Below are positions 33,513 to 37,500 of a DNA stretch of 64,000 bases, piece after piece. The position numbers were made by a program, and so were the translations under genes. The stretch is from sequence record MZ475892.1; one strand, written 5' to 3'. Position 1 is the stretch's first letter. Each line of letters begins with the position of its first letter. The notes below the pieces were generated by a model. That model ran no database searches, had not been told where the DNA came from, and saw only the letters and a program-made list of their open reading frames with translations.

Positions 33513-33719
33513 ATGAAAGACATTGTGCTACACACAGCCCTTTTATTGACCATGATCGTTGTTAGCTTTTTGACTCTCCACTATATTCGTTTCCTGAGTC
33601 TGGGCTACTATATGCTGATCACTATGACAGCATTCGTACTGGCAGTCTATGCGTGCAAGAGTCTCGCAACTGCTGTCACTAAAAATCGTTTTAACAAAGT
33701 GAGAATCAATCGTGGCTAA
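33513..33719 (+). CDS. small membrane protein
   Basis: 68 aa, two hydrophobic segments, basic C-terminus. Confidence 0.6.
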   Translation: MKDIVLHTALLLTMIVVSFLTLHYIRFLSLGYYMLITMTAFVLAVYACKSLATAVTKNRFNKVRINRG

Positions 33720-34257
33720 ATCTTTCGGTGTGTATCTGACGTTCATTCTGCGCCATCGACCGCAAGACATTGGCATTGCAATGGACACCCAAGGCTGGGT
33801 ATCAGTTCCAGACTTGCTCGAACGTGCTCAATACAAGAAGCAGCCAATCACGTTAGAGATGTTGCGCGAAGAAGTTGCTACTGACGGTAAGGGCCGCTTC
33901 CAGTTCAACGCTGCCCACTCTCGCATTCGTTGTGTGCAGGGACATTCAGTTGAGCATGTGATTCTTAACCTAAAGCCGTATACGAATCACAATGACCCGC
34001 TGTATCACGGAACGGCCAGCAAGAACGTTGCGTCTATTCTTGCGCAGGGAATTCTTCGCGGTAAACGTAAACACGTCCACATCGCAACCAACACCGCTAC
34101 TGCTAAGCAAGTTGGTCAGCGTCACGGTGAACCTGTTGTGTTTGAGATCGACACGTATGCCATGATCGTTGCTGGCTATAAGTTCGAACAAGCCGAGAAC
34201 GGTGTGATTCTTACCGAGCACGTTCCATCCCGATATCTAAGGTTGGTAGAGTTATGA
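33712..34257 (+). CDS. kptA: RNA 2'-phosphotransferase (KptA/Tpt1)
   Basis: ILRH.P..IG...D.QGWV, KGRFQ, IRCVQGHS, LYHGT, KRKHVH, GQRHGEPVV motifs. Confidence 0.92.
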   Translation: MAKSFGVYLTFILRHRPQDIGIAMDTQGWVSVPDLLERAQYKKQPITLEMLREEVATDGKGRFQFNAAHSRIRCVQGHSVEHVILNLKPYTNHNDPLYHGTASKNVASILAQGILRGKRKHVHIATNTATAKQVGQRHGEPVVFEIDTYAMIVAGYKFEQAENGVILTEHVPSRYLRLVEL

Positions 34258-34661
34258 CTGAACAACGAATGAGTTATTGCGGTTCACGTTACATCCGTAC
34301 ATCTTCTGGCAGGTGGTATTTGCTTTTCGAACGAGCCGCCTGCTTGTGCATCAATCGTCATGGTACCCAGTACTGGCGAGCAGGTACGCAAGTGTGGAAG
34401 GATGTGTCTCTCTCAACTCGCGCCACTTTGGAGAACGAGTTTATCAGTCGTACCCGCAAAGATTTCAGGGAGTCGAAGTCTGCGTACAACAGATGGGGCA
34501 AGGTGATTCGTACACTCATTCTAGGTGCAGGCACTAACGAGCATCTCCACGATTTAGCGTCGATTCTTGAGGCGCTGAGACAGACGCATATAGGGCGCAA
34601 GCAACAGCAACTGCGCACTACATTGGATGAAATAGCTATTCAGTCGAGAACTACCCTGTGA
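34254..34661 (+). CDS. hypothetical protein
   Basis: 135-aa ORF, ATGA overlap. Confidence 0.7.
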   Translation: MTEQRMSYCGSRYIRTSSGRWYLLFERAACLCINRHGTQYWRAGTQVWKDVSLSTRATLENEFISRTRKDFRESKSAYNRWGKVIRTLILGAGTNEHLHDLASILEALRQTHIGRKQQQLRTTLDEIAIQSRTTL

Positions 34662-34667
34662 TATAAT
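34624..34667 (+). promoter_or_regulatory. early promoter (WGG..AAAT class)
   Basis: TGGATGAAAT; 32 nt to TATAAT; TGA extended -10. Confidence 0.75.
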
Positions 34668-34718
34668 AGCAGCGAACGCTAAACAGTCTCGTTTAGCTAC
34701 TTACATGAGGATATGTAT

Positions 34719-34820
34719 ATGATTAACAACTACTGCCCGTTTCGCGCTGTGATGTACCACGCTTCAATCATCCTTCTCGCCATTTGCTCTGGCGTTGTTT
34801 TAGCCCACGCACATTTCTGA
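34719..34820 (+). CDS. 33-aa peptide MINNYCPFRAVMYHASIILLAICSGVVLAHAHF (below ORF-track cutoff)
   Basis: GAGG SD 8 nt upstream; its TGA overlaps the TCTGAGGAG RBS of the radical SAM gene. Confidence 0.6.
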   Translation: MINNYCPFRAVMYHASIILLAICSGVVLAHAHF

Positions 34821-34831
34821 GGAGAATAATC

Positions 34832-35971
34832 ATGATGCGTAACTTCACGGCAATCCTGCCAGTAACCTGTAATGCCGATTGTTCATTCTGCCCTGAGAAA
34901 GAAATGGAGCAGAAAGCTACGAACCGCCAGTGGCTGACTAATCTCATTGCGCAGATTAATGACCATGCCGGTGAGTTCGACCACGTTTCAATCTCTGGTG
35001 GTGAACCTACGCTCAAGCCAAAGTTCCTGTTTGAAGTGATCGATGCGATTCGCACTCAAACGGATATCGATAAAGTTGGACTCACGTCAAATGGTCGCTT
35101 CCTGAATAAGCAAGACAGCATCTTCCAGTTCCTTGATCTGAACACAGACGACATGCTGGAAAGCAAGCTGTCCCATCTGAATATCAGCCGTCATTCATTC
35201 GACGATGCCAAGAACAACGAGATCATGAAAGTGCGTTACACGTACACGCTTGATGACCTCGTGAAGTTTAGACGTCAACTCGGCACAAAGCTGAGCTTCC
35301 ACATTAACTTTGTTATCAACGAGCACAACATCGATAACATTGAGTGGGAGTTTGCACAGGCTAATCGATTCATGATGGAGAACCCGTGGATCGATGTAGT
35401 GTTCCGCGTTGACTACGCAAACGAAAAGCTGAATCGTCGTCTGCGTCGTTACGGCCTGTCTGTGCAAGCGTGGCGTGATGCAACTCGCGGCTCTATTCGT
35501 GATGAACGCATAGCGCGTGAGAATCTGAAAAAGAAACCCAAACTTGTTCAGTTGTTCGACGGTGTATTCAGTGGTACAACACAGGACAATGACGGTACAT
35601 TTACCGATGCGTGTCCAAGCTGTTTCGTGCATCGCAGCCAGAAGATTCATAACAACCATGCGTGGCTCAAAGCATCCTCGTTCGAACCGAACGTAGACGA
35701 AGAGGAATACACTGAGTACGTGTTCCACATGGACGGTGAGCTTTACTACGACTGGTCGCGTGCCGAGCCTGTGCCTGACGTAGAGAAGAAACCACGCAAA
35801 CACAAAGCCATTCGCATTGTCCAGAAAAAAGCGGAAGAAGATGATATGGATGAAGACATGCCTGCATCTTCTCGTATGGGTTGTCAGTATAGAACTGTCG
35901 GATGTTCTTACGGTGAATCAGAATCTGCTGGTGGCTGTTCATTTAGATCTCCTGGCAGCTGTAGCTTTTAA
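34832..35971 (+). CDS. radical SAM enzyme with Cys-repeat C-terminal tail
   Basis: CNADCSFC (CxxxCxxC), ISGGEPTL, LTSNG, NISRH motifs; tail with 4 x (G/S)C(S/Q)(Y/F). Confidence 0.88.
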   Translation: MMRNFTAILPVTCNADCSFCPEKEMEQKATNRQWLTNLIAQINDHAGEFDHVSISGGEPTLKPKFLFEVIDAIRTQTDIDKVGLTSNGRFLNKQDSIFQFLDLNTDDMLESKLSHLNISRHSFDDAKNNEIMKVRYTYTLDDLVKFRRQLGTKLSFHINFVINEHNIDNIEWEFAQANRFMMENPWIDVVFRVDYANEKLNRRLRRYGLSVQAWRDATRGSIRDERIARENLKKKPKLVQLFDGVFSGTTQDNDGTFTDACPSCFVHRSQKIHNNHAWLKASSFEPNVDEEEYTEYVFHMDGELYYDWSRAEPVPDVEKKPRKHKAIRIVQKKAEEDDMDEDMPASSRMGCQYRTVGCSYGESESAGGCSFRSPGSCSF

Positions 35972-37236: not shown

Positions 37237-37500
37237 ATGGCAGTAGGTTTCGCCAAAGATGATGACGTGTCCAATACCGTCGAAACAAACGTGCTGAATG
37301 AAATCGACCGCGCTCGTTCTGAGTTGCGTGGCGCTGGTAGTTCGCACTGTATCAACCCTGACTGTGGTGCAGAGATTCCACTCATGCGCCGTGTAGCAAT
37401 GCCGAACGCTCGCTACTGCGTTAGCTGTCAAGCTCACCATGATGGTACGCCTGCTGTTGGCTACAATCGTCGTGGCTCCAAAGACTCTCAACTGAGGTAG
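37237..37500 (+). CDS. ybiI: DksA/TraR C4 zinc-finger protein, YbiI-like
   Basis: C...CGAEIP..RR.A.P.ARYCVSCQ and terminal GYNRRGSKDSQLR as in enterobacterial YbiI. Confidence 0.85.
   Translation: MAVGFAKDDDVSNTVETNVLNEIDRARSELRGAGSSHCINPDCGAEIPLMRRVAMPNARYCVSCQAHHDGTPAVGYNRRGSKDSQLR

Follow-up and report, generated by a model that had tools for sequence, protein, structure and literature searches.

A MoaA-like radical SAM family of phages predicted to work with a short terminal Cys-pair peptide, fused to the enzyme or encoded beside it

Class I and class II RNR carry a disordered, Gly/Ser-rich C-terminus whose C-x4-C motif shuttles into a buried radical active site; in E. coli NrdA this tail has the form ...C-x4-C-x2-end. 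Borosins (OphMA-like) carry their own core peptide at the C-terminus of the enzyme, with split versions in other lineages. Sacti- and ranthipeptide synthases (CteB/SCIFF, SkfB, CrpC/CrpA) have a Cys-rich peptide or protein as partner, its gene lying next to theirs, and binding of a substrate Cys to the auxiliary cluster, as in CteB, is an established theme. In MoaA, a disordered C-terminal tail enters the active site and triggers SAM cleavage; this tail is active in trans as an 11-mer and is modelled by AF2 with a pLDDT below 70 (PMC12625886).

Few kinds of "hypothetical" accessory gene are commoner in large phages than those for radical SAM enzymes, and hardly any of these has been given a function. 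One such gene lies at 34832-35971 (+; 379 codons plus TAA) in the window, that is, the whole stretch of 64,000 nucleotides that we analysed from sequence record MZ475892.1. The window matches the 264-kb Erwinia amylovora jumbo phage pEa_SNUABM_34 at 100%, and the product, here called P0001, is entered in GenBank for this Erwinia phage, with 100% identity, as an unannotated "hypothetical protein". All features given below by window position lie on the + strand. Translation likely starts at the ATG at 34832 rather than at an upstream TTG: a Shine-Dalgarno sequence, GAGGAG, can be read directly from the sequence at 34819-34824, 7 nt 5′ of this ATG. The TAA stop codon (35969-35971) directly follows the last Phe. 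A promoter and terminator scan gave no signal above background. As a stand-in for the whole genome we used the tiled record of a 98%-identical phage, in which this is the only radical SAM gene.

Likeness to MoaA extends over the radical SAM cluster, a C-terminal beta-sheet domain with C-x2-C and a hairpin Gly at +9, and a C-terminal tail that is disordered and in which the last residues appear to matter. The differences are these: the MoaA tail ends in Y-I-G-G (Gly-Gly), whereas P0001 ends in ...GSCSF and its relatives in Cys or C-G-x; the third auxiliary-cluster Cys, present in MoaA, is absent from the family; the linkers of the family are long and hypervariable, and its terminal module may be N-terminal or on another protein; and the family is found almost entirely on phage contigs.

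The catalytic core of P0001 is that of a radical SAM enzyme. The sequence CNADCSFC (34868-34891) provides the CxxxCxxC for the [4Fe-4S] cluster (C13, C17 and C20), invariant in our two alignments of relatives, A1 (39 sequences down to 26% identity) and A2, which together reach about 25% identity. The match to Pfam PF04055 (Radical_SAM), at 44.4 bits, exceeds the cut-off of 29.5, which places the protein in the superfamily, and an SGGEP motif and a partial TIM-barrel fold are present. The AF2 model of P0001, for which 39 homologues were used, gives pLDDT above 90 over most of residues 1-320 (34832-35791), a confidently folded MoaA/viperin-like core, and shows disorder from about residue 322 onwards. 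Foldseek with this model returned viperin, MoaA, SkfB, SuiB and EpeE. For the model of a relative, P0067, the best structural match was S. aureus MoaA (1tv7_A; Z 17.4, rmsd 3.8 over 249 residues), residues 1-270 being aligned to residues 9-307 of the chain, a span that includes the MoaA auxiliary-cluster region; viperin, GDGT-MAS and SuiB came within about 1 Z unit of MoaA in the same scan. On these models the core of the family is predicted to adopt a MoaA-like fold.

No described function could be assigned by profile. The top NCBIfam matches of P0001 were HxsC, prokaryotic viperin and MoaA, each far under its cut-off (HxsC TIGR03977, 53.9 versus 267.9; viperin NF038283, 51.3 versus 180; MoaA equivalogs TIGR02666 and NF001199, 44.4 bits versus 284 and 44.9 versus 231), as were the glycyl-radical activases (PFLA, 28.3 versus 231.75; NrdG, 31.4 versus 131). 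PHROGs labels the protein just "radical SAM domain-containing protein", a structure search among viral models returned generic radical SAM names only, and no family member matched a curated family other than generic radical SAM. RRE-type Pfam matches were likewise not found in P0001 or its family members, a domain type that is often missed. The C-terminal domain was less accessible to sequence comparison: hhalign and HMM alignments to MoaA end at about residue 190, short of this domain, phmmer with residues 195-325 found no match among PDB sequences, and the ESM Atlas gave sub-threshold leads only (Mob_synth_C, 0.83; SPASM, 0.82).

The folded C-terminal domain of the family contains two Cys only, those of an invariant CPxC. 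In P0001 this is C-P-S-C (C261 and C264; 35612-35623), unchanged throughout A1 and A2 and placed by the AF2 model at the turn of a beta hairpin with strands 257-261 and 264-268. The turn is predicted to have metal-knuckle geometry, not that of a thioredoxin-type redox CxxC. E. coli MoaA has CATC-x13-C, with the third ligand at +14, and shares with the family the pattern C-x2-C-x8-G, in which the Gly at +9 lies in the hairpin turn; a third Cys 8-20 residues after CPxC was absent from 199 of 212 family members. Judged from the structural span and the local pattern, CPxC appears to correspond to the first two ligands of the MoaA auxiliary [4Fe-4S] cluster, with the third missing, and it presumably binds metal. 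The view of the preliminary description that the tail is not a canonical SPASM or twitch domain is borne out, in that none of 64 family members matches SPASM (PF13186), even at E≤1, and Mob_synth_C is likewise without a match.

Beyond the core, a disordered, charged linker (residues 309-349; 35756-35878; pLDDT below 50) runs from a basic part, EKKPRKHKAIRIVQKK, into the acidic AEEDDMDEDM. It leads into four Cys units in the translated sequence, G-C351-Q-Y (35879-35890), G-C358-S-Y (35900-35911), G-C369-S-F (35933-35944) and, at the chain end, S-C377-S-F (35957-35968). The tail therefore reads ...QKKAEEDDMDEDMPASSRM-GCQY-RTV-GCSY-GESESAG-GCSF-RSPG-SCSF-stop. Both this sequence and the spacing C-x6-C-x10-C-x7-C had been given in the preliminary description and are exact in the translation of 34832-35971 (+); its starting point for the tail feature, 35822, is the codon of Q331, and its end point, 35971, falls in the TAA. 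From the proteome of the near-identical phage, the expectation is 0.048 C-x-aromatic units in every 30 aa, giving P(≥4) of about 2e-7, and of 665 open frames in that phage only the one encoding P0001 has four such units; a chance origin of the four units is therefore excluded. No tandem repeat was found at the DNA level in the tail region. AF2 leaves the tail undocked (pLDDT below 50 in P0001, 59-76 in the short-tailed P0067), which is uninformative, because the functional tail of MoaA is also modelled with low confidence.

To our reading of the literature, in which no description of the family or its tail was found, these enzymes form a previously undescribed, MoaA-like phage radical SAM family. 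A word-indexed search gave 68 relatives, nearly all on phage-sized contigs, and a profile search of 1.84 billion representatives gave 243 clusters (50% identity) at E<1e-30. About 240 clusters share the MoaA/viperin-like core, the invariant CPxC and a Gly/Ser-rich end motif with two or more Cys; CxxxCxxC, CPxC and the terminal Cys, at least two in number, are the only Cys conserved family-wide. Two of the four tail Cys of P0001, C358 and C377, are each kept in at least 90% of the 39 A1 relatives, and of 178 members with a tail, about 90% have 0-2 residues after their last Cys. Among 129 representatives (50% identity), 60 have two tail Cys, 19 have three, 20 have four, 11 have five and 15 have six or more; a single Cys occurs in one and none in three. 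The number ranges from 2 to 10 and is odd in 27% of representatives, with a spacing of mostly 3-10 residues. The linker before the first tail Cys measures 11-106 aa, is hypervariable in length and sequence, and may be basic, acidic or coiled-coil. We take the tail to be a family trait and no quirk of pEa_SNUABM_34. Lack of conservation, which had been named beforehand as part of what would refute the reading of the tail, does not apply, because the tail is the family-defining feature.

The residues around the Cys differ between lineages. An aromatic residue after the Cys, noted in advance as (Y/F), holds for P0001 and the enterobacterial jumbo-phage clade, to which it is specific. Units in this clade read [GS][SGR]-C-[GS]-[FY], with the aromatic residue closing most chains; other lineages have [GS][GS]-C-G, their chains ending in ...GC, ...CG or ...CGx. 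Many clade members also have an extra N-terminal domain of about 95 aa (MKKIKHTFRLTDLV...) before the core (residues 1-95 of P0008, P0011, P0012, P0019, P0021, P0025, P0028 and P0035; loci L007-L021), of which tblastn found no remnant upstream of P0001 (E>2).

About 15% of representatives end directly after the folded core. We looked up 13 such tail-less relatives and left out two (L005 and L092), whose contigs were too short. In 10 of the 11 informative cases the motif was found elsewhere, either at the end of a small protein (65-217 aa) whose gene adjoins that of the enzyme or lies one gene away, or at the N-terminus of the enzyme itself. Seven partners carry it at their C-terminus: L001 (79 aa; ...GGCRSGGCY..RCGGGGGRC), L004 (...GTCGFTGC), L034 (65 aa; ...VGCGSGGCGH..SCGSGGC), L086 (101 aa; ...SGCTRSTRCG), L087 (82 aa; ...SGCGRNNSSGCGGGC), L088 (78 aa; ...SNCGRGGDGHC) and L093 (114 aa). 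The partners at L002 (217 aa) and L003 (MCGSTSGCGSPY...) carry it at their N-terminus, and at L089 it lies at the enzyme's own N-terminus; no Cys-pair partner was found at the L091 locus. As background, 1.2% of all ORFs of 40 aa or more at the retrieved loci carry the same motif at an end. The cores gave a tree in which split and fused forms intermingle and an N-fused form is sister to a C-fused form; at least 2-3 changes are required by well-supported branches and 6-7 by parsimony, in a topology that is only indicative because it was computed with FastTree. The relocation of the motif in 10 of 11 cases, together with the interspersion of the forms on the tree, argues that the Cys pair is a separable, obligate and portable partner. 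Among the loci compared, the Cys-pair module is also the one constant partner of the enzyme; neither a protease nor an exporter nor any other gene was conserved beside it. We therefore propose, from the pattern of fusion and separation, that these enzymes always work with a short terminal Cys-pair peptide, whether fused or encoded adjacently. A detachable terminal Cys pair, apparently indispensable to the enzyme, would then be the diagnostic feature of this 243-cluster phage family, and the naturally split pairs could serve biochemists as ready two-component systems.

As to what the pair does, we tentatively favour, with slightly less than even confidence, docking of a tail thiolate pair at CPxC, where it would complete or cap an auxiliary Fe-S (or Fe/Zn) site as ligand or gate. 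The flexible linker would let the chain end swing into the active site, as the disordered tail of MoaA does, and two tail thiolates together with CPxC would make up a four-Cys auxiliary Fe-S (or Fe/Zn) site. The enzyme would be competent, or gated, only with the tail engaged, and surplus Cys units, of which pEa_SNUABM_34 illustrates the case with its four, would provide spare or alternative pairs. Docking of pair with pair is suggested because CPxC supplies two Cys, the third ligand is missing, the partner brings at least two Cys, and the MoaA tail offers a precedent. The consensus [GS][GS]-C-G would also be a typical metal-knuckle context. We infer both docking of the tail and a ligand role for the pair. 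Once docked, the pair may simply stay a ligand or gate, which is the version we prefer, although taken by itself it is possible rather than probable; its subsequent chemical modification takes the smaller part of what we grant to docking and is unlikely. Counting against docking, the Cys spacing, the number of Cys and the linker length are far looser than is usual for cluster ligands, and ligands supplied by a long disordered arm or a separate small protein would be unusual; we know of no described case in which cluster ligands come from a mobile arm or a separate subunit. Completion of an auxiliary cluster in this way, if true, would extend the recently solved tail-gating mechanism of MoaA.

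The tail, or the adjacent small protein, could instead be a fused, RiPP-like core that is modified at or near its Cys by its own enzyme, with the charged or helical linker as a built-in leader; this is a doubtful but serious alternative. The chemistry might be a sactionine- or ranthionine-type thioether, Cys oxidation or a C-terminal reaction. A small Cys-bearing peptide gene beside the enzyme, a RiPP-type feature, is found in 10 of the 11 split loci, the peptide being fused in the window, and these small ORFs are hypervariable with conserved Cys, as in precursor/maturase pairs. The units are repeated 2-10 times with only the Cys and its nearest neighbours conserved, and near relatives change the spacers and keep every C-x-[YF] unit. 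Structural neighbours of the P0001 and P0067 models include the peptide-modifying SkfB, SuiB, CteB and EpeE. Fused and split enzyme-core architectures are familiar from borosins, although these belong to the SAM N-methyltransferases instead of the radical SAM enzymes and have their product freed by a dedicated protease. Cross-linking of Cys-rich proteins by a radical SAM enzyme, as in CrpC/CrpA (PMC13692751), also speaks for this reading.

Several observations weigh against it. Neither a SPASM/twitch domain nor an RRE was detected, in which the family differs from the sacti- and ranthipeptide synthases, as it does in the usual fusion of the peptide and in the minimum of two Cys in a Gly/Ser context. 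A thioether needs one Cys, yet two is the minimum here, a single Cys occurring in 1 of 129 representatives. In about 85% of members the product would stay joined to a used-up enzyme of 35 kDa, whose neighbourhood offers no conserved protease or exporter, and the available acceptor residues are mostly Gly or Ser. The preliminary description had suggested a multi-core precursor fused to its own maturase or, alternatively, an unusual auxiliary Fe-S or metal site, and both appear compatible with the sequence data. The module can be encoded separately beside the enzyme, as the precursor of a maturase or an accessory subunit would be; the multi-core part of the former proposal fares less well, since the conserved unit is a Cys pair and the aromatic residue is confined to one clade. 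Variation in repeat number among homologues, which had been put forward as a check, is indeed seen, but two is the mode (60 of 129), which does not fit a simple multi-core arrangement. It is thus conceivable, if rather unlikely, that this is the first radical SAM family to carry its own substrate, the Cys-pair peptide being threaded into the active site and transformed; the product might, with the same reservation, be for example a thioether- or thio-derived cofactor or cross-link. Were the peptide the enzyme's own substrate, hundreds of phage lineages would make a self-matured, peptide-derived group during infection, and the arrangement would amount to a new self-modifying, RiPP-like architecture.

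A redox or sulfur relay arm is improbable, more so than a self-modified peptide. In such a scheme the terminal dithiol would swing in and deliver two reducing equivalents or persulfide sulfur to CPxC or to the substrate (nucleotide or RNA), to be recharged by host thioredoxin/glutaredoxin or cysteine desulfurase. The disordered, Gly/Ser-rich C-x4-7-C with its last Cys 0-2 residues from the end resembles RNR tails, the two-Cys rule holds, and the nearest folds, MoaA and viperin, act on NTP ribose. The enzyme fold, however, is different from that of RNR, an active-site disulfide in the P0001 family is a candidate only, and CPxC occupies a beta-hairpin turn, whereas thiol-disulfide oxidoreductases have their Cys pair at the N-terminus of a helix. 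We know of no radical SAM enzyme with such a dithiol relay. Were it real, it would link radical SAM and RNR logic.

Frequent RNA-repair and nucleotide neighbours also favour a relay arm. In the window, a Tpt1/KptA RNA 2′-phosphotransferase gene (33712-34257; Pfam 1.6e-44) lies upstream of the P0001 gene, with a 135-aa ORF (34254-34661) between the two. The order Tpt1(KptA), 135-aa ORF, radical SAM gene is that of the Erwinia/Dickeya clade, KptA being present at 16 of 20 loci. Elsewhere the neighbours are Thg1 with phosphatases (L087), RNA ligase with NeuB and a CMP-transferase (L089), a PP-loop ATPase (L032) and, in other lineages, RecT/YqaJ or a DNA methylase with PhoH. This recurring RNA-repair neighbourhood hints at a nucleic-acid substrate, but the associations are loose and lineage-dependent, which counts against the relay.

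A tail without a catalytic part, whether a Zn-binding, oligomerisation or DNA-binding appendage (for packaging or localisation) or a glycyl-radical-like motif, is very improbable: linkers are often Lys-rich or coiled-coil, some relatives lie within head or tail gene modules, and the "RCGY" ends of relatives recall the glycyl-radical signature R-V-[CS]-G-Y, but a non-catalytic appendage would not persist as a separate adjacent gene in 10 of 11 tail-less lineages, and this pattern of relocation, with the lack of a Gly at the critical position in P0001, makes both forms unlikely. For P0001 a glycyl-radical motif was rejected outright, its units (CQY, CSY, CSF and CSF) being without Gly, the Arg in a different register, and the PFLA score of 28.3 standing against 231.75.

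The gene contexts of two split forms concern the partner rather than the enzyme. At the P0187 locus (JGI 3300072015, T4-like), a 74-aa partner and a tail-less radical SAM gene stand in a run with portal, prohead protease and scaffold genes, in the order portal, prohead protease, partner, enzyme, scaffold, and at L002 the partner and enzyme directly precede the tail sheath and tube genes. From these contexts, the partner may be a virion or assembly protein in some lineages.

Other small genes around P0001 were also considered. A terminator-like hairpin (34778-34794) overlaps the hydrophobic 35-aa ORF (34713-34820) that separates a TGnTATAAT-like box (about 34661-34670) from the P0001 gene. A conserved precursor peptide is an unlikely role for this ORF, which outside the window occurs only in the 98%-identical phage, in no other clade member, and is without the family motif. 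The small-gene run downstream includes an 87-aa DksA/TraR-type C4 zinc-finger protein (37237-37500; Pfam 2.2e-10). Further away, the near-identical phage encodes a 1397-aa protein (phrog_29316; L101:6262-10452 (-), equal to G002:C1:120259-124452), which is possibly a trans partner of the radical SAM enzyme, or else unrelated. It ends in ...WTWAQVTVC(D/E)xxCGSMSC(A/S)ARGY(L/M)SGG-stop, where three Cys and Y-x-S-G-G recall the Cys-pair motif and the ...SYIGG of MoaA. Its last ~60 residues or so are near-invariant in 19 same-clade homologues, in a region that is about 40% identical overall.
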